Source of the DNA: Asterias rubens
Lineage: Eukaryota
DNA: 64,000 nucleotides
Assembly: GCF_902459465.1 (NCBI RefSeq)
Contig: NC_047082.1
Coordinates: forward strand, 6,262,001-6,326,000
Reading direction: 5' to 3'
Part shown: positions 46,003 to 64,000 of the stretch, piece after piece
Position numbering within the stretch: position 1 is the first letter of the stretch
Layout: each line of letters begins with the position of its first letter
Translations under genes and position numbers: made by a program
Notes under the pieces: model-generated
Seen by the model: the letters and a program-made list of their open reading frames with translations, nothing else
What the model was told of the DNA's origin: nothing
The model's database searches: none

Positions 46003-46560
46003 CTACTCGATGACATGACCGGTCAGGCAGTGGGATGCGAAGCGGCCGTTGGTGTCTGCTTGCAGGCAGTGCAGACGGATATGCGGGGTGGTTGGTGCGA
46101 CGGCAGGTCGCTGGCAGACCACGTATTTTGGCCAGATACAAGTATTATCACTCCAGCGACCATTGAAATCAGGATTCATGAACGCGCAATCTTCACCCCC
46201 TGCATTGTTGGGTTCTCCTGGATACCAGTTGAAGAAACTACATTCTTCACCCCCGTCACCAGGCTGCAACCACTTGCCTTCTTCCTCCTTGTCAGTACAG
46301 CCGATATAAACTGCTTCTGAATCAACTGCATTGACCAACTCCCAGATAAATAGATGCTCTTGGAGTGAAGTAGGGACTGCCACACGGCTTCTCATGTCGG
46401 TACATGTGATGTCTGCGTCATCAAAAGTCATTCTCTCCATCACTGACTTGTAGCATGACTCGCCAAATATAACCCACTCGGAGGGGCAGATCAAATCTTC
46501 ATTGCAGCTCGATACCAAGAAATAAAAGGCAACTGCGAAAAGTAAAACTAAAGTTTTCAT
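46003..46560 (-). CDS. Secreted C-type lectin (signal peptide plus CTLD with EPN motif), intronless, ending at a premature TAG
   Basis: MKTLVLLFAVAFYFLVSS signal; CPSEW...SCY; YIGCTDKEEEGKW; NWYPGEPNN...EDCA...GRWSDNTC...VVCQ. Confidence 0.9.
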   Translation of the reverse strand: MKTLVLLFAVAFYFLVSSCNEDLICPSEWVIFGESCYKSVMERMTFDDADITCTDMRSRVAVPTSLQEHLFIWELVNAVDSEAVYIGCTDKEEEGKWLQPGDGGEECSFFNWYPGEPNNAGGEDCAFMNPDFNGRWSDNTCIWPKYVVCQRPAVAPTTPHIRLHCLQADTNGRFASHCLTGHVIE

Positions 46561-47679
46561 GATTGACAATAAAGGAGAAATTTTGCAGGCAACGCTAGAA
46601 AACTCCAACTTGCATGAACAACGCTTTGCCTACTCTGGTATCAACAGGTAAACAGTTGACTTAAATAAAACAATTAAGCATCTGAGGTTTTCAAATCTCA
46701 GCGTCACGTTGCTATGGTGATCCAATTGTATTATTTTCCAGCAGTTCTGATCCTAATCTGTCGATTCAAAGGCAGGATACTCAAAAAAGGTTACTCAAAA
46801 AGAAATTACGTATTTGTAATCGTATTTGCACAATCATCATTGTGTATCGCATCGCAGAGACGTGTGGACGCATTGATAGAAGAGATCGATACAACCAAAC
46901 CCAAGACCAAGTGCTCGATCGTATTAAAAATTAAAAATTTAAAATACGTCTCCGAGGTAAACGAATACGTTCCTTAAGTCATTGGTTCTCAATACATGCC
47001 ACTTCATCCTCTGGGTTTAATAAACACTCCATCCAACCAACCTGTACAGTGTCATAACTCGACATTTCCATTGGGATTGGGACTGGGTCTGGGGAACGGG
47101 GTAGTGGAACCCGCAGTGCCCCAGTGGCTTAGCATTTGCATGTTTGGAGGTATAAATCAGGCAGTGGTGCCAACGGCAAGCTCATCCTCTTTGCAGCACC
47201 ATTACCAGTGTGGAAGCTACAACTGGTAATTTTTAAAGGCCAAGCAAGTTATAAGGAACGACTTAAGTGGGCCAGCATTCCCATTCAATCCTCAACCTTT
47301 GCCAAATTTCAATGGTCTCACATTGTTTTTGTCTTCCCCTTAATAAAAAAAATAAGTTAGGTCCCTTTTCCGGCCATGTGTCCATCTCCAATGTTTACCT
47401 TTTGGCTTGGTGCCGTAACGTTTTGCCTATATTCATATCAATTGATTCACCACATTTCGTTCTCTGTTGGGCACTCAATAAATGATTTCATAAAATGGCT
47501 ACAATTAGCAGACATTTATTATTTACGACAATTGCTGATACAGTTCAAATTCAAGATTGTTATAAGTTACAAAAAGTTAAACTGAACATAGTAGGCCTAT
47601 ATCTAAAACAAAATCATTACAAACGGTTCTGAATTGAAATTTAGCATTTTTTTTAATGAAGAGGGAGGGCATAATGTGA

Positions 47680-48398
47680 TGACGTTAACGTTCATTTGGT
47701 TAGTGGACATCACCTGGTAACCACTGTTAAGTGAAGTGGTGACGTTAACGTTCATTTGGTTAGTGGACATCACCTGGTAACCACTGTTAAGTGAAGTGGT
47801 GACGTTAACGTTCATTTGGTTAGTGGACATCACCTGGTAACCACTGTTAAGTGAAGTGGTGACGTTAACGTTCATTTGGTTAGTGGACATCACCTGGTAA
47901 CCACTGTTAAGTGAAGTGGTGACGTTAACGTTCATTTGGTTAGTGGACATCACCTGGTAACCACTGTTAAGTGAAGTGGTGACGTTAACGTTTATTTGGT
48001 TAGTGGACATCACCTGGTAACCACTGTTAAGTAAAGTGGTGACGTTAACGTTCATTTGGTTAGTGGACATCACCTGGTAACCACTGTTAAGTGAAGTGGT
48101 GACGTTAACGTTCATTTGGTTAGTGGACATCACCTGGTAACCACTGTTAAGTGAAGTGGTGACGTTAACGTTCATTTGGTTAGTGGACATCACCTGGTAA
48201 CCACTGTTAAGTGAAGTGGTGACGTTAACGTTCATTTGGTTAGTGGACATCACCTGGTAACCACTGTTAAGTGAAGTGGTGACGTTAACGTTCATTTGGT
48301 TAGTGGACATCACCTGGTAACCACTGTTAAGTGAAGTGGTGACGTTAACGTTCATTTGGTAAGTGGACATCACCTGGTAACCACTGTTAAGTGAAGTG
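47680..48398. repeat. 60-bp tandem repeat, 12 near-identical copies
   Basis: Unit GACGTTAACGTTCATTTGGTTAGTGGACATCACCTGGTAACCACTGTTAAGTGAAGTGGT; three single-base variants seen. Confidence 0.97.
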
Positions 48399-49684
48399 AT
48401 TGCTTGTTAAAATTGTCACTTCCATACAAATGATGTGTGTCAAAAAAACACTACCGACAAACGGCTTTATAAAACTGGGGCGTAGGCTTAAACCCTTGGT
48501 AAATGCATTGAAATTGTGTATACAGCATTCCTAAAAAATAATGCAACAAAATATGTTTTCTGAGTGTTTTAATATAACCATCAATTTCATCGTTAATTCA
48601 GATTCGTTTTCAGTACAACAATTTTCTTTCAAGTACTCCTGTGTTGCATTTGAATTAATACATTATTTTTGAAGGCATATCAAATAAATGCATAAGCTTA
48701 TTTTATTTTTGCATAATAATATACATACAATTAAAGAAAACGTTCTGCACAGTGATCGAAATACTCACATGATAACTTTCAGTCAAATCAAGGATAAAGT
48801 TATGAAAACAGACAGTATGATATGTTTCATAATAATAAACTAAATACATGTATATTCTTTAAATGTTATTCATTCTTTAAAAATGCTAAAATTAAACAAA
48901 ATTAAAATTAGTCTTTTAATTTACTTCCAACAATTAAATCCACACAAAGTGTAATGCATGAGAATTGCAAGACACAGCTATTTACAAATTAATTTGTTTG
49001 ATTAAATAGTAGGCCTAAAGTCTATGTGTCCTACTTTCTAAAAGCAAAAATTAATCAATGCAAATACAGTTAGAGTCTGATAGAATGATTGTACATTCAG
49101 TTGCGTTATTCTGCTCACGCGTAGAGTTCCTGAGTTTGACCTCATTGGTATTCAGGTCAGATACAGAACATATCTCAAGAAGGGTGTGCCAAAAGCAGCA
49201 AATTATTACGCAGCTCGGATCCTAAAATATAAATCTTTGAATTGTTCATCCGAGTCAGAGTAGGCCCAACTACAAAGAAAAATGTGGATATTTATTTCAG
49301 ATTATTTTATTCAAATGTACACAAAATAAATTAAATCAGACCCTGTAGTGAGTTAAAAACAAACTGAAACAATAATTTTATTCTCAAAATTGTCAAGAAT
49401 TGTTTTGTCTAACCATTGTGCCAATTGACAAGTAACAGAGTGCACCGTTTCTGTCAGACGACGTCCCCCGATAGCAAATATACATATCCAGTTATTAAAT
49501 GAAACCAGTCGAAACAATATCATCTTCCCAAAAACTCAAATACTTTTCGGATAAATAAGACACTTTTTATTAACAATAACAAAAGTACGATCGTCTTACA
49601 AAGTAGACCACTTTCTATCATTCCTTGACCGATCGTTATGGTACCAGCTTCCACAAGGAACCAGTTGATGGGGGGGGGGGGGGT

Positions 49685-52600
49685 CTAAAGGTTTGCGTAC
49701 AAAGCGTTAACGCCCAAATACATCTGTAAGGCCTCGTATATAAACTCGTACTGCTCCTGAACGAAACGAAAAAGAGAGAAAAGAAAAAATAATACCCTGA
49801 ACTAGAGGTACATATACAATTTTTGTTTACTACAAAAACAAGGTGTTCGTGGTGAGTGAGTGAATGAATTGGTGACAACATTTTACCTCATCAATCCAAT
49901 GACTGGTTACGGAGTTATGATTTTTTTACAAATTAAACACCAACTTCCGGTTTGCATTGGAGAAAAGGTCAAATAGGGGTTACTTTTTATGTAGCGCGTG
50001 ATAAGTTTATTAAGACCTTTTAAATGATGGATGGGTTGTAAAAATCCAATATTTGGTTTAGAAGTTATGGTTTGTTCAAATATAAAGTTTCAACTTCCGT
50101 TTTGAACCGGAAGGTACTGTCAAATGAGGTCACACTTGGTAGCGTTGGTGATGTCTTTTGAGTTCTATCTTTTGACGTATAGATGATAAAAATCAAATCA
50201 TGTGGTTTAGGATTTTTTTATTTTTCAAACATTATATATCAATTTCCAACTTTAACTGGAAGTCAAGGTCAAACAGGGTCGCATATTGTATAGCACGTGA
50301 TAAGTCTATTAAGACCTTTCAGATGATGCATAGATTGAAAAAATCCAATGTATGGTTCAGATGTTATGATTTTTTTTCAAATATTAAACATCCGGTTTGA
50401 ACCGGAAGACAATTTTGTCAGGTCACAAATTATAGCGTTAGTAATGTTTTTCAAAGCCTTATCTGACGACGTTCAGATAATAAACAACTAATTTCTGGTT
50501 CTGGGGTAATATTTTTTCAAATAATTAACTGCATCTTCCTGTTTAACTGGAGGTCAAGGTTTAATAGTCAATGTTGTGTATCGTTTCTTAAGTTGTTACA
50601 TACCTACCCAATGACGTATAAATATATAAAAAATCAAATGTGTGGTTGTGAAATTATTTTTCTTTGACCAATTATTTTCAACCTCTGGTTTGAACAAGAA
50701 GCCAAGTTTAAACTGATTTCATTTGTGTAGATCCTGACTAGTTCATTAAAACCTTTCAGCTGATGTATGACTTGTAAACATTTTATAATTATGTGATGGA
50801 CTATCTGAAGGTGTATAATGTATCTTATAACATCAATGCATATGTATTCCTACTTGTAGTTTTGGTGCGAGACGTTGTTCATTATTACTCAACTACTGCG
50901 ATTCACCGCGATTCACTCAGCGCTCGATGTTACTAAAAACGTTACAGCGCCCTCTTTCGCTGGACTAAAGAGAGCACTTTTGGGAATTCCCGCGCTTGCA
51001 CTGCATAGCGTACATAGCGTGCGTTGTTGATCAAAATGGGGTAAACGCGTGGGTCAACAGGTGCTTTGACGTCCCTTTTCGACTGATGTAAACGTCCAAA
51101 TTTTGTTATTTCTGTGCAAAAGATTGAGCGGGATTGTTGTTTTACAATCTGAAACAAAAATTACGTTGAAATGATCAGTAGTTTTAAAAACATGAATACG
51201 ATAAGATTTTATGAAATTTTCAAATTTTGTTTTGCACTAGAAGTATTAAAAATATTTTACGTGTTCTGTGAAGCATTTGTCCAACTTTTAATGATCTATC
51301 CGATGATGTGTAGATTGTCAAAATCCGATTCATAGTTTTTGAGTTATGATTTTTACAAATATTAAACTTTGATCTAACGTAATTCAATTCCCGATGACGT
51401 CATAATGACGTAATTAAGTATGTGTTGTCTTGATACTGAGGTTCAACTATCTGTTGAGTTTCAACATTCCATTCAATCTCAATCTTGAGTTATTCCGTAG
51501 AAAAGCTCGAAAGTTGTTTTTTGACGAAAAAAACCCGAAGGTGAACTTCGACCCAGGGTAACGACCCGGATGCTAAGGTCGTACGATTTTGGCGTTAACT
51601 TTTCAAATGTTGCCCCAGTCTTGGTCTATGAGATGCGAAAACCTTGAACATCATAGCTTTCATATTCGTTGAGACTTTAAAAACCCTGTAATTTGACACC
51701 TAATGACGTCATCATGACGTAATGAAAACTGTGCCGTCTTCGTATTGAGGTTCAATTGTCTGGTGAGTTTCAAGGTTCAGTTTGGCTTGAATCTTGAGTT
51801 ATGCTGTAGATAAGAGTTGACGGGAAGAAGAAGGAAGATGGAGAAGAGAAAAAAAACAGAGCAATAACAATAGGTGTTCGTGCATCAGCACGAACACCTA
51901 AAAAAGAATATTTCCATCAGACTGTGCACACTTTTTGATAATGAGTTTACATGCATTGACCTTATCTAGAAAATATGGGTACTGTTGCCTTTTGAGATCA
52001 TGTAGCCTGCTCGGATCAGGCTGACACACCCGCTTTAAGAACAATCTTAGCTCAGTGTATAATTTGTGTTTTGCTGTTTAGCAGAAAATGTTGCTTAATT
52101 ACTTACTGCTAAGCCGCAAATACAGGGATACCAGTTAAGAGGGTACATATGCAAAAACTGAACTTTGGGAGGTAACCATTTTCCGATAAGCAAAATTGGC
52201 CAATGGTGTCCGTAGGCTGCCAGATGCGTTTGAGGAACAGAGACTGGCCGCATATGGAAAACTCGGCTGCCAAAGTATACCAGAGTAAACTCGGCATAAT
52301 GTCCTAACGGTTAAGTCAGCTTATCTATAAGTACACTCAAAGCACACTCTGCTCCCCTAAGATGCAATGTTCGAATGGTAAACTCAGCTTACATGTGACT
52401 GCACCAATTTATGCAGTACACTTTGCTCGTCATGATGCAATGTTCGAATGGTAAACTCAGCTTACCTGTGACTGCACCAATCCATGAAGTACACTTTGCT
52501 CGTCATGATGCAATGTCCTAATGGTAAAGTCAGCTTACCTGTGACTGCACCAATCGATAAAGTACATTTTGCAATAATGAGACGATGCCCCAATGGTAAG

Positions 52601-55600
52601 TCAGCTTACCTGTGACTGCACCAATCGATGAAGTACACTTTGCCATATGAGACGATGCCCCAATGGTAAAGTCAGCTTACCTGTGACTGCACCAATCCAT
52701 GAAGTACACTTTGCCATATGAGACGATGCCCCAATAGTAAAGTCAACTTACCTGTGACTGCACCACTCCATGAAGTACACTTTGCCATATGAGACGATGC
52801 CCCAATAGTAAAGTCAACTTACCTGTGACTGCACCAATCCATGACAAGAGACTCTGAGTTTCTGGACTGTCTGGAAGACATCCACTTTATTTTCAACTTC
52901 TAGTCTCTCTATGACGTTAAGGAGGGCACAGAATGTTCCACTGACGCCCTCACCATCACTGTTAAGAACAAAACCATTACATCATTCGAAAGAGGTGTAC
53001 ACAGATGATTGGGGTTTTCTAAAACGCAAATAAAACTATCAGCCTCTATCTTATTCTTACTGTAAATTTTATTGTGTTTTCTTTTCTGATTAAATCTGGA
53101 TCATGAATAAGAAGTTACTGTTTATTTTCAATTGGAACTTTACGAACCAATAACAATTAGGATTACAAGTTGTTGCTTTGATTCCGAATATATCAATAAA
53201 AGGATTGGACTGATGTGATCGACGTTTAAAGGAGGTGATGTGGTTGAAAAATAGTTGAAAAATTAACAAGTTACTCTCTCAGCCCACCACATTTTCCCAA
53301 ATTCATTTTTATGGGTTCTTGTAGTATGCATTACATTTGTAAAAGAAAGGACACAAAATCTCTAATATGTTTGAAACTTAACGAGTTGTTGGATTGTGTT
53401 TTTCTTTAAAACTAGCGGAAGAAAATGACCAAACATCATACATGCACTGAATTGTAATTCGGTCATCCTTATGCTCGAGTTGCCACTCTTTAACGGCTGT
53501 AACCAATTCCACGATGGATTTGGGTGATGATGGTATTCCACCTACGGGCCAGTTCAGGAGTTGAAGGTGGCAAATCAGACGGGATTCCTGTGTATCAATG
53601 GCAAGAATGAAACCAAATCTTAAAAACTTCTGCAATTAGAAAGTCAGTCAGTGCAAACACACTGTATCCTGTTTGTGTAATGTGTATATGCCGTTGTAGC
53701 CATGCCTCAAATGATTCATGTAACATTAGTTTCAGTAGGTATAACAGTTCTGCCATTTAAGCAAGCACAGACCTGTAGTGAACTCGTTTTCTTTCTAAAA
53801 AACAACTTTTTGCACTGATATGAACATTAATTTGTACAGTTAACAGTGGAAAATCTTAAAAACTATTGGAAACTTTCGAAGGGACACTTAGCCTTGCTCA
53901 AGGCAATCGCATTGTTCAGTCCGAAAAAAAACCGCCGTAAACCCACAAAATACACACTCTGCGTAATTGAGTACCGCATCGCACGACCCACCCGCATACA
54001 GAGGCGTGGCGCAAATAAAATAAAATTAAACAAAGATAATTCAAACAAATCCATTGCCTTGCTCGAGGCTAGACAAGGCAAAATGCAACAGCGAGAGGCC
54101 TTTAATTCCATTGCCTTGCTCGAAGCTAAACAAGGCAAAATGCAACAGCGAGAGGCCTTTAATTCCAGTGTTTTTTAAGTAATTATTCAAACCGTATAAT
54201 TTGTATATCCAAGCATGGTACGCTGTGGGAGTACATTTTCCAGGGAAGTTTTAAAAGCCACCACTTCTTACTCCATGTCTGAATAAGTGGCTACGACTTG
54301 GTCGTTTAACCTGCACATCACAAAATTAGGTACCCCTTATAATTAGTAACATCATCGGCAACAGCCAGAACCACAGTGATAAACTCTTACAGTATTAAGC
54401 CATAACTGAAGTACTGGCTGCGGCTATGGCTTCATCTTTATCTGAGCATGTGATTGAGCATAGGATTCATACAGCAACCCCATTTGCAACAGCCACAGCC
54501 GCAGTGACCAGTTGAGACAGCCTTAAGCCATATCTTAAGTAGAGGTTGAGGCTACCGCTTAATCTTTACCTGAGCATACACTGAAGCTAGGATACCCATA
54601 GCAACACCACTAGCGACAGCCACATCCGCAGTGACCAGTTGAGACAGCCTTAAGCCATATCTTAAGTAGAGGTTGAGGCTACCGCTTAATCTTTACCTGA
54701 GCATACACTGAAGCTAGGATACCCATAGCAACACCATTAGCAACAGCCACATCCGCAGTGACCAGTTGAGACAGCCTTAAGCCATATCTTATTAAATAGA
54801 GGTTGCGGCTACCGCTCAATCATTACCTGAACATGCACTAAAGCATAAGATACCCATAACAACACCATTAGCAACAGCCAAAGTCGCAGCCGCAGTAACT
54901 TATCTAGACAGCCTTGGTTTGACACAATGCACGGTTTTAAAGAATTATTCTAGCTTGATACCTGATTATCCTTGTTGGCCAGGTATAGGTAGCGTATGAT
55001 GATGTTTGGTCCCACTTTATCGGTAGACTGTAGAGTAACTGTCAGATTGCCATATGATGCAGAGTCTCTCTCTGGCCAATACTTGACACACGTATGTGGG
55101 AAGGAAAACAAGTAGAGATAATGATTAAGATATAAACATGCGCAAAACAAATGAGTTTTTAAAAGTAAAAATGTTCTTATAAAATACAGTAGACTTTCGA
55201 AATTAATTTTCCAAGCAACACTTTTATGATCCAGTAATCCATCATTTCATATTGATCAGCCTTTGTCACCACTTTGGTCCTAATGGTTCACAGCCACCTA
55301 CTTTTTCTGGATCATTCCCTTAATCCCTTTACCCTCTGTTATTTTTCTATAAATGGATATGTATTTGTTCGTACTTATTTATGCCATTATTATGAGTAGG
55401 GTAGATGGCCTTAGCTTTCGGTCCAAACCAGGGTTTGGTCTGAGTCTCTCCCACACATTGTAGCCCACATCTCTTACATGGTATGACATAAACTACTTTG
55501 GGTGTGCTACATTGGGAGTCGGTATTAAATGTAGATATTTTTAATGATCAAATTAATTTCAATTTGTTTTTAAGTACAACTACTTCTACTCACGTGGTCT

Positions 55601-57397
55601 TTTTTCTCTAGTGTATTCAACATGACGATACAAGTTGACTTGTAGTCATATACCATTCTCCACATGTCACTGATGGTGTGGGATAAGGGCATTGAGGTAG
55701 TAACGTACTGTCCCTTGTAGCTAGGACTCTTTCAAATTGGAAGACAAAGTTGTTACGATTCAAGCCCAGCTTTTACGGAGAGTGTATCATTGTTTTCCAA
55801 AAAAAATACAAACATTATTAATTTCAGATGTGAACATTTCTCTGAGGATTGGTTCCGGTATGCTTTTTAAAACCAGTCAGCTTTCATATGAAAATAAAAC
55901 TGTGGAGAATTGCTACTGGTATGACTTTTCAGTGACCTTGAAGATCGAAATATTTCTCTAGTGGTTGAGTTTTTAAGAAGGAACAACAAAAATCACCCAA
56001 GTATGTTACCTACATTGAGGAAGCAGGCATTGATGTGGTTGTTGTATCCATGTTTTCCTGATGTCATCAACTGAGGTCGGTACAGATCAACTTAAAAAAT
56101 ATAAAGTTGATGACATTAATTTCACCGTTTGGTGCTTCACTAGATCCTTCAGTGAGGCCTACATATATCATGCCTTGAGCTGGTTCAACCAAGCTTTAAA
56201 TTGGTGACAGTGTGGTTGAAAAAGATATCCCGCCACCCTGGCGTAGGTTTTATAGCAACACCTTTTAAAGTGTTAATAAATACTGCTGGGAGAATAACTT
56301 TAGTTTGTTTCAGTTTGGTAGATAAAGAAAGCTGCTTTGCTATTATAAACAGCACAACCTTTCCTTGAGAGGTCACTATAAAATGAATCAAACCTCACCT
56401 GGTAGTTTGCCTGGAAATCTATTTTTCTTAACGTTGTCTGGTAGCCAACCTCCTTTAAATATGTCAGGGTTCGGAATGTTGGTGACCAAGTTTAGATTCT
56501 GTATCAAGACAACCAGAATGATTCGGTTATTATGTAATGCATCTTACCACATGACTATTAGAGATGGGTTTGTTGGAAAAACTGTGCAGCACTTTCTCTT
56601 AAAATTTTGCGCCTCGATTGACGCCACGAACAGCACCCTCTCGGCTCGGGGTCTACTCTCAAATTTGTAAATAAGATAAAAAAAATTTTTAGAACCGTAG
56701 TTAACAGTTCATACACAAACCACTCATCAAAACACAAATATTCGTGACAAGCGCTTTATTTTGACAAAATACCACTTCCAGGTGACTTTACAATTGTGCA
56801 AGCATACATCAATGCATCATGGCATTTCGTGAATTTCCTATTAGCCAAATTAAATCTCTGAACATCCTCTCTTTGTATAGTGGTTTTACTGTGACTTTAA
56901 TCGGTCATTTACGTAAATGGATTATAAGCATTCTTGAAGTTTCCCCAGACAACTGTTATGCCCAGGCTACTGGGGTGGTAGCCAATTCTCAAACGGGAAC
57001 TGGCCTCATTTTGTGGTTTTAAGACAGATGATAATATGATCAGGGCTCCGTGAAGTTGGAGGTTCGGTTTGAGTACTTATACCAGTTTTTGACTGTTATT
57101 CCAAGGGCTTGCTCCACTAGTAGGAATCCCCTAAACACTGTGCCACCCATTGTCATCGCTTCGACAACCTCTAGACCCCGGTTCCTACTTCCTGCAAATG
57201 CGAATGTTGACGTCACAGGGCCGTGTTTGTAGCGAATGTTTCGCAGGAATTGAGCACAATTCAACTGCTTCGAATTATTCGTTGCGAATTTGTGACGTCT
57301 TAATGCTACTCTCACACTTGGACGAATATTCTTGCGGATATGAATATTTGAAATTCGCGATGATTTCGCCCGAAAGTTGCGATTTGATAGTGAATAT

Positions 57398-57489
<92 letters not shown>

Positions 57490-60400
57490 GACTTGTAATG
57501 CGCACATATCCACCCTGCTTGGTGTTCAAGGCGTGTTCTTGGTCGTCCTTAAACCTCTCCTTACTAATATCTAACACATAATACCAATGCTTACAAAAGT
57601 CGACGGCGAATGACGTCTTCGCAACATTCGGTGAAATTTAGAAACCGGTTTCTAAATTGACCGATCTTTGTAAGGAGGTGGGTAATAATTTGTGAACGTT
57701 CCGAATTTGTTACCCACGCTTAGGAAGACACGGCGAATGTTGCGAAGTGTGAGCGATTGTCAAATATTTCCTTCCGTTAGCATATTCGCCGTGTGAGAAC
57801 AGCATAAATTGAGGGGGCGAACGACTTGTGAATGTAGTGAATATGTTACCAACGCTTATGAAGACACGGCGAATGTTGCCAAGTTTGAGCGATTGTTAAA
57901 TATTTCCATTCGCTAGCATATTCTCCGAGTGAGTTGAGGGCAACTCAATTCAGTGCGAGTTTCGTTGCGAATATGTGACGTCAACATTCGTATCGCATTC
58001 GCAGGAAGTATTGCTACTCTCACACTAGGGAAAATAAGCTAGCGATTGGACTTACAAAATGGAACTATTTGACATTCGCTCAAACTTCGCAACATTCGTC
58101 GTGTTTCGTAAGCATTGGTAACAATTTCGGAACGTTCACTAGTCATTCTTTACCTCTTTTCGAAGATCACTCAATCAAAATGTGGCAAATATTCTTGCGA
58201 ATAAAATTGTTTACATTCGCGGTGAATTCGCCAAACAATTGCGATTGGGTGGTGAATATTTTCATCTTGGTCACCCCTCGGTCGTCCCTCGACCTCTCCT
58301 TAACAATATATGACCAATGCTTGACAATGCTAGCCAATGCCTTACAAATAGGCAACGAACGTTGCGCACGTCGCGACTGAGCTTACCAACAATTTCAAAC
58401 AAGTAAAGCCAATGTCTTACCATCGTTGCCAATGTCTTGCTATTTTCTGACTAATTTCCGAACAATGGATTACGCGGCCGCGATTGCTATAAGTACAGGG
58501 GCAAATCTCGCTCTGGCCCGCGAAGGTTACAGACGTCTTACAGGTGCCTTTACGAACGTTGCCAACGCTCACGCATGCTTACAGACGTCAACAATGGCTT
58601 ACCAATGCTAACGAATGTCAAGGCGAATGACCGTCTTCACAACATTCGCTGAAATTAACAAACCGGTTTGTAAATTGACCGATCTTCGTAAGGAGATGGG
58701 GCGTGAACGAAGACACGGCGAATGTTGCAAAGTATGAGCGATTGTCAAATATTTTCATTCGTAAGCACATTCACTCTAATATTATTCGCAACAGTTTGAA
58801 ACAGCATTGGGAAGCGCTTTTTAATTTCAGCGAATGTTGCGAAGACAGTCATTCGCCGTAGATTTTAGTAAGCATTGGTAGCCATTAGTAACGTTGGTAA
58901 AGCGTGCGTAAGCGTTGGCAACTTTCGTAAGCTATTGTAAGGCATTGGCAATCATTGGCTAGCATTGTTAAGCATTCGTAAAAAATCGTAACATATTGGT
59001 ACGGACAGGTCATGGGGTGACCGAGGGCGACGTGAAAATATTCACTATCAATTCGCAAATTTTGGGCGAATTCACCGCGAATTTCAAATATCCATATTCG
59101 CAAGAATCTTCGCCCAAGTGTGAGAGAAGCATATGAACCGGGCTTTGCACGTAAATATGATTCACATTCGCATTCGCATGATGTTGAACCGGGCTTTACT
59201 TTGAATGCACATTGACGCCAACAGTACTCGGCACTATAGACCCACATACATCTTGCAGTTAACACAAACTAGTGTAAAATCTCGCTCAGCATAATGAGCG
59301 TTTCTTGCAAGCAGTCAAGTGCATTGGACTATAATGTGTAATACCAATTAGTGATAATAATATGAGGTGCTTTGAGGGGTCTACTTTGGCTAAAAAGCGC
59401 ACAACAACGTCACATGGTTTTATTACAGAACCACATTATCATGACTCACCTCATAATCAAACAGAAACCCATTGCCTTTTTTGTATGTTTCCTTCTTCTT
59501 TTTGCTGACATAATCGTCGAACTCTGACAAGAGAATCGGGATAGGAGCAGTAAACTGTTTCTTCTTAACCAAGATCTTCGGTCTGGCTGGTGCAGTGGCT
59601 GATGCCGTGGCTGGTGAAGTGGCTGGTGAATTGGCTGGTGCCGTGGCTTGTGAAGTGGCTGGTGAATTGGCTGGTGCCGTAGCTGGTGTGGTGGCTGGTG
59701 CAGTGGCTGGTGAAGTGGCTGGTGAAATGGCTGGTGCCGTGGCTCGTGCAGTGCTCATTGTGGTATCAGCAATAACGTCATAGGTAACATCACTCGTTGG
59801 ATGTTCTAGTCCTGAAGAAAGGTTGTCATTGCTTAATACTCGCATCCCTGCTGTAACAACAATTACTGTGAAGATTTCAACAAAAAGCATGTACAGAAAT
59901 TGTGTATAATATTTGTACTATTTGATCAAACTTGTATAGTTTATGGATCAAAGTTTTTCGCAACGATGCCAACAACAACATAATGTTTAAAAGGGTCAAT
60001 AGTTTAATAGAACATCCAACATTTGAATCGTGTTAATAGTAGAAAATGCAAGGCTTACCATTTGAATGTTACCGGGGGGTGACAATCATTGCTGGAATAA
60101 GGGTATGTAACTAAGATCAAAACGTTAAGATGTAAAAGTGATGACGTTCCAACTTTTAAAGGCAGTGGACGCTATTGGTCATTACTCAAAATAATGATGG
60201 CATAAAACCTTAACTGTTGACGAGTAATGGGGAGAGGTTGATGGAATAAAACATTGTGAGAAACGGCTCCCTCTGAAGTGCCATAGTTTTAGAGAAAGAC
60301 GTAATTTTCCACGAATTTGATTTCGAGACCTCACATTTAGAACTTGAGGTCTCGAAATCAATCACCTAAACGCACACAACTTCGTGTGACAATGGTGTTT

Positions 60401-63400
60401 TTTATTCTTCATTATTATCTCGCAAGTTCGATGACCAATTGAGCTCAAATTTTCACAGGTTTGTTATTTTATGCTTATGTTGAGATACACCAACTGTGAA
60501 GGCTAGTCTTTGACAATTACCAATAGTGTCCACTGTCTTTAAGCAACTCCTGGAACTCTAAATTTCAATGAGCTTCTGCTGAACTGTATACTCAGCTTTA
60601 GATAAAGTAGACGGAGGACCAGGGTTTCTTTGTAATCTGATGACAAAAACAGCAACACTCGCAGAGGTTTTAAAGGCCTGAACCTGGAAACAAGGTTATA
60701 AACGTCCAACGTCCCATCCTTACTAACACATCTGCACATGTTTTCTTTTTAAACTAAAGGATTGCAGAATGTGTTAATATTGTGACTTGCCATTAACAGC
60801 GTTGAAATGCATACCTTCCCCTGAGCTACGGTTAAGTGTTCTCTTCCGTCTGTCAAAGATAAAGTAAAACAGGAAAAAGAAAGAAAACAATTACGTGTCA
60901 CTCAGCAACGATTAGTTGCAGTTCTTAGATAATTTATGCATTGTAAATGGTTCATCACTACCACTGCTCACAGGAAAAAGCTAAATAGCATATGAGTTAA
61001 AGTAAATTGGTTAGCAGGAATATTTTACTTAAAAGTTTTTGCGAACATTTCATATAGAGTTGTCTATGTCCAATTTTTTTTAATTAAAAGCCCCAGATAA
61101 ATATGAAAGCAGCATAAGGCTATGTAAATATGAAACTTCAAATGAACCAACTGTAACGGGCATCCTGTCCTGCTTGTTTCTGCCAAATGTGTAAAGCAGT
61201 ATTGTTTTTATTTGAACGAATGTCCCTCTCATCGAGGAAATGACAAACAAATGAGACTGTAGTAATTACCTTTTTTTGAAGATCAAAGCCGATATAACAC
61301 AAATCACGACAAGTAACATCAATGGGCCAACAATTGCAGCTACCAGTGGAATTTCACTTTGCGGAACTGCCAAAGACATTGTTATGTAATGTTTGTACTG
61401 AATTAAATCAGATGTTCCAACCAAATTCTCAATTTTATGGAAATAAAGTTCACATGAGTTGACTTTGACAGTATTTGGGGTTAATTGCACTTTGAGGCAC
61501 TGCCAAAAAAGATAACAATGTTTAAGTTTTGAAAGTTATCTATTGTTGTTGACATTGACGTTGAGCTAACATTTTCGACGTCGAGTGAAAAAATGTCGCA
61601 AATAATAATATGACACTGAAAACAACCCGTGCAGGATTCCAAATTAAGTTTTTTTTTTCGAAAAGCTGGCCGCCTAGTTTTGTAAATTTGTCAGTAAAGA
61701 ACAAACATTGCATGATAACTGCATTACAAACTTTTCTTTATATCCATAGTATGGAAACTCATAAATTATCATTAGTACTTAATGAAGGAACCACTCATTA
61801 TTGTTCCTCTTCATGCTTCACTTTAAAACAACCTGGGATGCTTTAAAGCAGAATTGCTACAATATGATCAATATTGGGCAGTTAATTACCTTGAACTCTG
61901 AGCGGTTCACTCCACTTAACAGCATAAGTCTACAACGAAAATTGAGAGATAACAACACATTAAACAGACCAAAAGCTTGCGCGAGCCGGGTGACGTAGCA
62001 ACTGTCTTGATAGTCTTGCGAATTCAAATGTAAGCGTTTTACTTGTTTTCAAGTTTTAGTGTTACACTGCCTCAACACTGCCTTAACTTTATGGACCAAT
62101 CTCCCAGAACAGTTACAAAACATTGACTCAATTGTTAGTCCGCACTTATTTAACATTGAATTCATCCTGTTTTGTTTAGTACATCTTGTGTTCTATTGTG
62201 TTTTTTCTCTAGAGCGCTTAGAGACATGTTGAACAACTATGTGTTATGCTCTTTACACGAATGGTTAATTATTATGACTATTTTATAAATAAAAAAACAG
62301 ACGTCATACGGCTCACCGATTGAGAAGTCCTACTGACTGATCCTAGGTAGATGTCATACAGAGTGTTGCTTTCCAGGGGTTTGTTCACGTTATTTCCCAG
62401 TGTTTCTCCGTCACCCACAGTGAATGTTGCAGGGAGATCAGTCTTATGTATTTCTGCAGCTACATAATCAATAGCTGGTGCAGTGGATCCCATGGTGTCC
62501 CTTCTAGTGACTGTCCGTATACGGCGCACACCGATTTGAATGCCTCTACACAATGCACAAACATGTTCGTGAGTGAGCACTTCAGTTTTCATTAGTAAAA
62601 ACATTTCTAGAGTAAGGTAAATGTCCGCGCAAATTTAAACAAACAATTGAAGTGATGCTTCATAATTTTTAAACTCGAGTTATAACGAGTCAAAAAGTAT
62701 ACGGTTCATTTGGAGTAATTTATTTGTCTGCTGTGGAAGAATAAATCATATTTGAATGGATGGTACGACCTCTACTATTCATTTGCTTGGACTTCATGAA
62801 GTTCTTGCCAGGTGAAGTCCTTTTTGGACATTCATACGATTTTATGTGTTCTTTAATTGTATCTTGAAGATGCCTTTGGGGCTTGTTTTGAATAAGTTTG
62901 TTTTTATGATTGAAACAATTAATAAACAAATTTATATTTAAAAAAAAAAAAATACACATAGGAAACTTCAAGTTAATGCAACACTATACAAGAGTGCACA
63001 ATAATCAGGCAAATTATTAGAAATGAATTCAGTGCTGATTGACCGACCTTAAACTTGGATTCAGATCTATTAATAACACCTTACCAAGATTAACAAAGAA
63101 CAAGGCTGACCTCAAACTTGCATCATTTCTACTTACGTAATGTATTTTGAGGAGGATGGAAGGTTCACAGCAATAGTGACTGTGGAAGAAGTCAAATGTG
63201 AGATATCGTTTTTGGAAAGCTGGGTCGGAGCAGAAAGATCTGTAAAGTCAAAGAAAAAATGTAGTTTTACCAAGGAAACATTCTTTATTTAAAGCATCAT
63301 AAGAGAGCATCTCAAAATTCAAATGGTTGGACTGTTTTAATTTGATCGGTGAGTATTCTAGAGTGTGTATATATTCCGTTAAACTGGTAGTTTCTATCAC

Positions 63401-63722
63401 CAACATGTGTTAATCCAAATCTCATAAAGAAACTAAATTACTCAAGTAAGAGTGTTATAATTACATAAAATCGTTTCACTTAAATGTTCACTTAATTTTT
63501 ACTTCCGAAAATACCTGTTTCAACTGCAGTAAATGTGTCCATTATTGTTTTCTCTCCAACACCAACACTGTTGAAACCTTCCAGTAAGAAATCATATTTT
63601 GTGGAGGGTTCTAAACCACTTATGTTGCGGTGCATATCTGATGGTTCTATATCAACCGTCTCGAATGAGTTGGTTGGACTGAAGTTGGCGTCATAAGGTT
63701 TTTCCAGCACCCTGTATGAGAG
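49685..63722 (-). CDS. Receptor-type protein tyrosine phosphatase (FN3 repeats, TM, single D2-like PTP domain); 5' part outside window
   Basis: Phase-compatible exons: 63515-63722 (FN3), 63137-63239, 62317-62545 (YVAAEI...FTVGDGETLGN...NKPL), 61890-61929, 61270-61366 (TM), 60815-60849, 59450-59850 (ends GFLFDYE), 56399-56498 (KKNRF), 56014-56090 (HINAC), 55594-55728 (DMWRMVYDY), 54962-55081/55093 (YWPE), 53442-53587 (NWPV), 52823-52958 (DGEGVSGTFCA), 49685-49756 (EQYEFIY...stop). Confidence 0.9.
49900..51900. mobile_element. Composite repeat with ~148-bp degenerate internal units and a terminal hairpin (Helentron/HINE-like)
   Basis: CTTCCGGTTTGAACCGGAAG-type motifs at about 148-bp spacing (49943-50690); duplicated block at 51390-51500 and 51700-51810; hairpin TAGGTGTTCGTGC-ATCA-GCACGAACACCTA at 51871-51900. 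Family assignment is inference. Confidence 0.5.
52364..52842. repeat. ~71-73 bp tandem repeat, ~7 copies, each containing the exon end and splice donor of the PTP exon 52823-52958
   Basis: CTTACCTGTGACTGCACCAATC (minus strand GATTGGTGCAGTCACAG|GTAAG) recurs at about 52388, 52463, 52534, 52605, 52676, 52747 and 52818. Confidence 0.92.
54350..54915. repeat. 127-bp tandem repeat, ~4 copies
   Basis: GTGACCAGTTGAGACAGCCTTAAGCC at 54504, 54631 and 54758, with degenerate flanking units. Confidence 0.88.
57175..59200. mobile_element. Nest of foldback/MITE-like elements rich in CGAA/TTCG motifs
   Basis: GCTACTCTCACACTTGG (about 57305) and CCAAGTGTGAGAGAAGC (about 59115) form an inverted pair; ACTTCCTGC...GCAGGAAGT inverted pair at 57187/58005; internal direct and inverted blocks at 57610-57680, 58630-58700 and 58820-58860. 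A related short copy lies at 28985-29120. Confidence 0.65.
57401..57570 (-). repeat. (AAT)29 microsatellite forming the tail of a short non-LTR 3' fragment
   Basis: The minus strand reads ...GTGCGCATTACAAGTC(TTA)n, a LINE/SINE-type 3' end. Confidence 0.8.
59587..59750 (-). repeat. 12-bp coding repeat (4-aa A/T/S/P units) inside the PTP juxtamembrane exon
   Basis: GTGGCTGGT core repeated; translates ATAPAISPATSPATAPATTPATAPANSP... Confidence 0.85.
60156..60542. mobile_element. Kolobok-like TTAA MITE
   Basis: TTAAAGGCAGTGGAC ... GTGTCCACTGTCTTTAA. Confidence 0.85.
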
Positions 63723-64000
63723 CTGTATAATGTTTGTAAAATGGGGAAACACACTTATTATAGATATATATACTTTCACACTCGCTATAGAAGTAAATTA
63801 AGTTGAGGTTCCTAGCAAATTTTAATTATGTTTAAAGGAAATTGAACTGAAGGTTAAAAACAATTGTTACTTTGGTTTAAAGTTTGGTTTGGTTTTAGTC
63901 TGTTGTCTGTCTTGTCCTGTATGGCATTCTCAAATCAAGCAAATGCTTACCGGGGATTGCCACCATTTATCTTACTCTGTCCTTTTTCTACTATTATTAT

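Follow-up and report, generated by a model that had tools for sequence, protein, structure and literature searches.

A stretch of 64,000 nucleotides from the starfish Asterias rubens (contig NC_047082.1, positions 6,262,001 to 6,326,000 of assembly GCF_902459465.1; hereafter the window, with positions counted from its first letter) was analysed for the structure and origin of LOC117304455, a minus-strand gene of the receptor protein tyrosine phosphatase (RPTP) type. Its product, XP_033644813.1 (P0017, 1204 aa), has one Y_phosphatase domain match in Pfam, where the tandem relatives have two, a membrane-proximal D1 and a following D2. An earlier note on this DNA had claimed that D1 was lost and a D2-type domain kept, and this core claim was supported by the spliced junction, a second assembly, phylogeny and orthologues. 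We regard it as close to certain that the gene is a full-length duplicate from the starfish tandem-domain RPTP family which then underwent a genomic deletion of eight D1 exons.

Exons A to H were read directly on the minus strand, to which all coordinates of the gene refer, and spliced by script; the gene-wide map was obtained by exact protein-to-genome mapping. All exon borders carry AG/GT, and the spliced model forms a single open frame of 399 residues up to the stop codon TAG at 49687–49685, identical (100% over 399 aa) to residues 806–1204 of XP_033644813.1. No N runs occur in the 64-kb window. The gene's first exon in the window is an FN3 exon of 208 nt (63515–63722, P0017 residues 568–636; exact map and fn3 Pfam match), the remainder lying beyond position 64000. 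It is followed by an ectodomain exon of 103 nt (63137–63239), a membrane-proximal FN3 exon of 229 nt and Fn3_PTPRU type (62317–62545, also matched by Pfam) and a 40-nt exon preceding the transmembrane exon (61890–61929), all three placed by the exact map. The transmembrane exon (61270–61366, 97 nt, ...IPLVAAIVGPLMLLVVICVISALIFKKR) was located by the map and by RNA contig X1 record 6, and the micro-exon RKRTLNRSSGE (60815–60849, 35 nt) was located by the map and fits 35 unplaced letters of the same contig. The product is thus a single-pass membrane protein, with its transmembrane exon at 61366–61270 and an adhesion-type extracellular region bearing FN3 exons. Its head, encoded outside the window, matches the ligand-binding region of Tie2 (2gy5, residues 70–311) over residues ~110–347 with an E value of 3.4e-37, accompanied by Ig, EGF-like and FN3 Pfam matches.

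Exon A (59450–59865, 416 nt; reading, RNA contigs, map) encodes the juxtamembrane region and D1-derived N-terminal helices (...KKKQFTAPIPILLSEFDDYVSKKKKETYKKGNGFLFDYE), and ends with ...GFLFDYE at 59450 in phase 0 before the donor GTGAGT, as had been read previously. RNA contig X1 record 6 joins the transmembrane exon, the 35 letters and exon A from 59865, which makes 59865 the main acceptor. The start at 59850 given in the earlier note corresponds to the acceptor used by annotated isoform X2 (a further one near 59847 gives isoform X3), while annotated isoform X1 and the RNA contigs use 59865. A Pro/Ala/Thr/Ser-rich coding repeat of 12/36 nt occupies 59584–59753 in the juxtamembrane part. The length of the exon bearing this repeat varies, being 416 nt in A. 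rubens, 524 and 467 nt at two loci of Asterias amurensis (L002 27271–27794 and L003 37344–37810, respectively) and 284–338 nt in tandem paralogues.

Exon A is separated from exon B by an intron of 2951 nt (56499–59449; repeat analysis, tblastn, flank comparison), which stands in place of the eight D1 exons. Exon B, the first D2 exon (56399–56498, 100 nt; reading, RNA contigs, map, motif table), starts at 56498 in phase 0 and encodes NLNLVT...KKNRFPGKLP, with KNRF instead of KNRY. Exons C (56014–56090, 77 nt, ...NHINACFLN; reading, splicing, map) and D (55594–55728, 135 nt; reading, splicing, map, motif table) are the second and third D2 exons, the latter with YVTTSMP where YIATQGP or YIATQMP is expected. 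The acceptor of exon E, the fourth (54962–55081, 120 nt; reading, splicing, map, motif table), lies 12 nt further downstream than in the tandem paralogues. The fifth and sixth D2 exons, F and G, were both identified from the reading, the map, PDB searches and the motif table: exon F (53442–53587, 146 nt) has WPVGGIP instead of WPD and ends in ...ITIQC, and exon G (52823–52958, 136 nt) carries the P-loop QCIDGEGVSG, in which His is replaced by Gln and Arg by Val while Cys is kept. Exon H (49685–49756; reading, splicing, map) is the last, with 69 nt plus the stop codon, and encodes EQYEFIYEALQMYLGVNALYANL.

Transcript evidence for the junction between 59450 and 56498 was sought in four sequencing runs placed on 55550–61549. 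RNA contig X1 record 1 (A. rubens, 388 nt, 0 mismatches) runs from 59653 to 59450 and then directly from 56498 to 56399, and the identical junction is carried by RNA contig X4 record 15 (469 nt, 8 mismatches) from a sister species. The junction is therefore borne out by spliced RNA contigs of two species. Raw RNA reads (X15) had almost no depth over the phosphatase exons, so that the support consists of contigs without read counts. In both A. rubens and the sister species, LOC117304455 is transcribed and spliced in its D1-less form.

The identity of the surviving domain was examined by comparison with its relatives. A search of sequence representatives (1.84 billion sequences), with exon F only (48 aa) as query, returned P0001, a protein of 1459 aa with two PTP domains, the second of which contained the match. 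P0017 is 73–83% identical to this tandem paralogue in every region over the whole length. From the junction to the C-terminus, identity to the A. amurensis tandem paralogues P0001 and P0013–P0016 and to P0075 of A. rubens was 72–77% for D2 and 33–38% for D1. When single exons were searched against solved structures, every match of exons F and G to a tandem chain (CD45, RPTP alpha, epsilon, sigma, zeta and LAR) fell in its D2 half, and exon D gave mixed D1 and D2 matches. In a tree of 108 D1 and D2 rows, the window domain grouped with two A. amurensis orthologues in a clade that fell inside the D2 domains of the tandem paralogues from Asterias; in a tree of 48 rows, this clade had a support of 100/99 and the enclosing Asterias D2 clade 100/100. 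Constraining the three D1-less domains to D1 cost 114 log-likelihood units (p-AU 1e-59), so placement with D1 was rejected. A protein from Patiria miniata with the opposite architecture (P0063, 1624 aa, one PTP domain) grouped with D1, which indicates that the tree method is able to separate the two cases. The earlier assignment of everything from NLNLVT...KKNRFPGKLP onward to D2 agrees with the identities, the exon layout and the trees.

The D2 origin does not extend over the whole domain, as its N-terminal helices are of D1 type: of the 45 residues upstream of the junction, 33–37 are identical to the pre-D1 segment of the paralogues and 8–11 to the pre-D2 segment. Judged from these alignments, what survives is a chimeric domain in which a D2 core carries the N-terminal helices of D1. 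Residues 896–1204 were modelled with AlphaFold2 from 53 aligned sequences; the model reached a pLDDT of 88.3 and a pTM of 0.88 with both N-terminal helices confident, and Foldseek, which did not discriminate between D1 and D2, aligned it to solved PTP domains with TM scores of 0.83–0.86. The chimera is accordingly predicted to retain the PTP fold.

The extent of the loss is seen from the exon layouts. In the tandem gene of P0001 (L001), a helix exon of 284 nt ending ...GFLFDYE in phase 0 is followed by D1 exons of 88, 77, 37, 98, 126, 149, 136 and 150 nt and D2 exons of 100, 77, 135, 126, 146, 136 and 69 nt, and the A. rubens tandem gene of P0075 (L004) has the same D1 and D2 exon pattern behind a helix exon of 338 nt with the same end and phase. 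The window gene has no D1 exons between its 416-nt helix exon and D2 exons of 100, 77, 135, 120, 146, 136 and 69 nt; the earlier note had given the 77-, 135-, 146- and 136-nt exons of this series correctly and omitted those of 100 and 120 nt. The eight D1 exons of P0001 comprise 861 nt (287 codons), the final one ending ...QVEFE in phase 0. The deletion took these 861 nt, that is the D1 core, the D1–D2 linker and the N-terminal helices belonging to D2 itself. One breakpoint falls in the phase-0 intron that follows the D1 helix exon (...FDYE) and the other in the homologous phase-0 intron of D2 (ahead of NLNLVT...). Because the two introns agree in phase and in their place in the fold, removal of the fused intron by splicing leaves a complete PTP fold in frame.

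The flanks of the A-to-B intron point the same way. Its 5' end resembles the intron after the helix exon of the paralogues (a 58-nt blastn match), and its last 20 bases resemble their intron ahead of the 100-nt D2 exon, a similarity seen by eye only; blastn of the intron against the 5–8 kb D1 region of the paralogues gave nothing beyond the 58-nt match, so the breakpoints are not placeable more exactly. The homologous positions and shared phase of the two introns, together with the likeness of the flanks, argue that the gene is a deletion derivative. Within the intron (59449–56499), nested inverted repeats resembling miniature inverted-repeat transposable elements (MITEs) extend across ~57178–59193, a (TAA)30 run is present, and several stretches reach word depths in the thousands in the sequencing runs, which bears out the earlier estimate that about two-thirds of its 2.95 kb are repeats. 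The outer arms (57303–57400 and 59035–59132, 98 nt, 89% complementary) are rich in GCGAATG/CATTCGC, like stacked foldback or MITE insertions, and the A. amurensis introns contain the inverted repeats of 57178–59193 as well. Four D1 queries run in tblastn (word size 2, E≤10) revealed no D1 relic, either in the intron or elsewhere in the 64-kb window, as the earlier note had also read for the intron. LOC117304455 thus lacks the membrane-proximal D1 with KNRY, WPD and HCX5R of a classical tandem RPTP.

Two D1-less loci, L002 and L003, were found in A. amurensis about 90 kb apart on CP134971.1 (~8.34–8.48 Mb), and the tandem paralogues lie on other chromosomes than the D1-less loci. The search for D2-only relatives that had been proposed therefore yielded D2-only orthologues in this species, beside tandem paralogues. 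The A-to-B introns of L002 and L003 are collinear with that of the window almost end to end at ~92% identity and have no D1 exons; tblastn with the four D1 queries matched these loci only at the D2 exons. Open reading frame and splice sites are intact at the three D1-less loci in the two species. The presence of the deletion in A. rubens and at both A. amurensis loci places it before the species split, and the D1-less form was found so far in the genus Asterias alone. The D2 parts of L002 and L003 are nearly identical (dS 0.006, against 0.033 for the whole genes), which suggests gene conversion between them, and the A. rubens annotation holds one D1-less locus only. Among the A. amurensis isoforms, P0064 was checked and has no PTP domain, and P0068 and P0069 are probably alike, judging from their length.

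An artefact, either a collapse in the assembly or exon skipping at a locus that still bears D1 exons, would be conceivable in a repeat-rich intron with a microsatellite at which reads are cut. It is very improbable here: a collapse is excluded by the recurrence of this intron at two loci in the independently assembled A. amurensis genome, the junction lies in spliced contigs of two species, and the window holds no D1-like coding sequence by tblastn. An ordinary single-domain receptor PTP with contiguous exons was the initial reading and was dropped after the per-exon PDB searches and the paralogue alignment. Under that explanation the gene would be a receptor of the R3-like or another single-domain type whose domain merely degenerated, with nothing lost between the exons; the helix exon and the next exon do form contiguous parts of one PTP fold, and the membrane-proximal FN3 is similar to its counterparts in other RPTPs. 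The chance of this is negligible, given the high identity to tandem D2 up to the C-terminus, the nesting within the D2 clade with D1 placement rejected, a D1-type helix segment before a D2-type core, and a D2 exon layout (135 nt undivided, 146 instead of 149, 100 instead of 88). The duplication of a tandem RPTP gene followed by deletion of the D1 exons is therefore held as nearly certain for the structural and evolutionary part, and the explanation as a whole, including a receptor unable to dephosphorylate, is given a probability of roughly 0.85.

The catalytic state was assessed with a motif table comparing tandem paralogue D1, tandem paralogue D2 and the window domain. D1 of the paralogues has KNRY, WPD, VHCS(A/T)GIGRTG and Q..QYEF intact, and their D2 has KNRF, WPVG and IQCIDGEGASG; by these motifs, D2 is already catalytically dead in the tandem relatives. 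The window domain shows the D2 states KNRF, WPVG and IQCIDGEGVSG, and carries two further changes, NHINAC for NYINAC and YVTTSMP for YIATQMP (A. amurensis has YITTPMP there). At exon E the former acceptor cAG reads cAT, and a change of GAG to AAG made a new AG 12 nt downstream, so that TCVE of the KC.xYWP motif is lost before YWP. Both residues whose substitution marks a pseudophosphatase are substituted, the Asp of WPD (WPV) and the Arg of the P-loop (Arg>Val, with His>Gln and Cys kept). The STYX type, in which the P-loop Arg and the phosphate cradle are kept and the nucleophile alone is changed, does not describe this domain, as Arg is replaced by Val and the loop contains D and E. Since the P-loop Arg and the general acid are absent, the product is expected to have no catalytic site, with neither catalysis nor STYX-like phosphate binding. 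This expectation follows from the well-established PTP mechanism.

One explanation for the D1-less gene is that the deletion removed the sole functional cytoplasmic module and left a decaying tail, with D2 drifting neutrally and any function residing in the Tie-like ectodomain, or the gene an incipient pseudogene. Several observations weigh in its favour and against a maintained D2. Between A. rubens and A. amurensis, dN/dS (NG86) of the D2 core was 0.7–0.9 (13 amino-acid changes in 261 codons), compared with 0.15–0.42 for the ectodomain exons in the window. Branch changes were polarised with three tandem D2s and single-step changes counted, giving 12 nonsynonymous and 4 synonymous D2 changes at the tips. 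A conservation test on 56 columns conserved in ≥85% of 50 tandem D2 domains found that the five closest tandem D2s deviate at 0/56 and each D1-less gene at 6/56; three of the six lie in the D1-derived helices, as expected, and three in the core. The core deviations fall on four distinct positions across the D1-less genes, some of them species-specific, and include independent changes at the near-invariant Gln of YIATQMP. To these lineage-specific hits are added the loss of TCVE by the acceptor shift and an annotated isoform, X4 (P0070, 978 aa), which ends two residues past exon B without a PTP domain. Such a pattern suggests relaxed constraint on D2 after D1 loss, although the counts are small and the deletion may fall anywhere along the stem.

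Against decay stand the intact reading frame and splice sites at three loci in two species, the transcription and correct splicing of the gene, and a chimeric domain with a confident fold prediction. The stem branch leading to the D1-less genes carries 13 nonsynonymous and 17 synonymous D2 changes, a ratio which indicates constraint on D2 over the long term. The counts are too small for a firm rejection of an omega of ~0.3–0.5, and the tandem D2 domains are fast as well (dN/dS 0.63 between P0075 and P0014, the latter serving as the A. amurensis counterpart and possibly not a strict orthologue). A tail in early decay is a serious candidate that we still rate well short of even odds. A maintained decoy or scaffold role fares slightly better and is likewise put forward tentatively; it appears somewhat likelier than the decaying tail, although the present data do not separate them.

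The decoy or scaffold interpretation, which the earlier note had raised together with a dominant-negative role, is made plausible by the D2 domains of PTPRK and PTPRU, both of which recruit Afadin: the D2 pseudophosphatase domain of PTPRK is necessary and sufficient for Afadin binding, and the D2 of the inactive paralogue PTPRU is also able to recruit it (PMC9640194). By analogy, the product of LOC117304455 would be a membrane receptor that still engages the partners of its Tie-like ectodomain and of its D2 surface and is unable to dephosphorylate. Most likely it acts non-catalytically, and it could do so by competing for ligand with the tandem paralogues, and possibly with Tie-type kinases of similar ectodomain, or alternatively by holding D2-binding partners away from an active D1. 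A narrower form of this idea, in which this D2-only, Tie-headed protein would serve as a naturally occurring, maintained dominant-negative with the same ligand and D2 partners as the tandem paralogues, tuning a matched kinase/phosphatase receptor system, is speculative and on balance doubtful.

Several other features were noted in and around the gene. A tandem repeat with a 71-nt unit (52374–52844, 6.6 copies, 92% matches) starts in the last ~22 nt of exon G, and each copy repeats the end of that exon and its GT donor (GGTGCAGTCACAG followed by GTAAGT). As 71 is not a multiple of 3, this provides a row of potential out-of-frame alternative donors in the G-to-H intron, which measures 3066 nt in the window and 1103 nt in A. 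amurensis L002. An element of ~390 nt (60156–60543) lies in the intron that separates the micro-exon from exon A. Its word depths sum to millions in every contig run and reach ~9,000–12,000x in raw RNA reads; internal joints are numerous, and its borders show loose ends. These depths and loose ends identify it as an interspersed repeat of very high copy number, which contains a hairpin at 60314–60362; Rfam gave only a sub-threshold miRNA-like hairpin match on 60156–60543. Immediately downstream of the phosphatase gene, an open reading frame on the minus strand (46006–46629) encodes a signal peptide and a C-type-lectin-like sequence. A Lectin_C gene likewise follows each of L002 and L003, with a Fibrinogen_C gene beyond it at L002; the lectin gene downstream at all three D1-less loci marks a conserved neighbourhood. 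Between the phosphatase and lectin genes, 47606–48406 (minus strand) is a 63-nt minisatellite open in one frame, whose 267-aa translation consists nearly entirely of ~12 copies of a 21-residue unit (TSLNSGYQVMSTNQMNVNVT...).

Among known systems, the closest are the tandem Tie-headed RPTPs of Asterias itself (XP_033636270.1, that is P0075, in A. rubens; P0001, P0014, P0015 and P0016 in A. amurensis). They share with the window gene the Ig, EGF-like repeats, FN3, transmembrane segment, Pro/Ala/Thr/Ser-rich juxtamembrane region, helix exon, dead D2 and D2 exon phases, at 73–83% identity region by region, but keep eight D1 exons with KNRY, WPD and HCS(A/T)GIGRTG, of which the window gene has none, and lack the changes added in its D2 (Y>H, Q>S and the loss of TCVE). 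PTPRN and PTPRN2 (IA-2, R8) are likewise single-pass membrane proteins with one catalytically impaired PTP domain; that domain is no D2 derivative and did not originate by D1 loss, and their luminal domain and biology (dense-core vesicles) are unrelated. The solved D2 domains of RPTP alpha and epsilon, CD45 and LAR (6uzt, 2jjd, 1ygr, 1lar) were the top matches of exons F and G and agree with the model at TM 0.83–0.86, but they always stand behind a D1, and several keep Cys-X5-Arg where the Arg of the window domain is Val. The vertebrate R2B receptor pseudophosphatase PTPRU is described as being without catalytic activity (PMC7320164, as cited in PMC9640194). It is comparable as an inactive receptor of the RPTP family whose D2 recruits the substrate of an active paralogue, for which competition or scaffolding has been proposed (PMC9640194). 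PTPRU differs in keeping both domains, with D1 inactivated in place, and in its MAM-Ig-FN3 ectodomain, whereas in the window gene D1 is deleted and the ectodomain is Tie-like.

No description of a receptor PTP keeping only D2 was found in the literature searched, most subscription journals being outside its coverage. The D1-less gene was already in the automatic annotation and is apparently undescribed, while receptor pseudophosphatases are a known kind. The reach of the finding is limited to Asterias so far, and D2 may already be under relaxed constraint. Its interest lies in the autonomous role of RPTP D2 domains, a long-standing question for which prior evidence came from engineered constructs and from PTPRU with both domains. 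Here one receptor family in one animal occurs with and without D1, a natural clean construct that permits direct comparison of D2 binding partners, of ligand competition by the Tie-like ectodomain and of selection on D2 after D1 loss. The gene also shows how a conserved intron phase in a duplicated domain enables the loss of a domain in frame. If the dominant-negative reading were true, the D2 of an RPTP would be functional on its own once capped with the N-terminal helices of D1.

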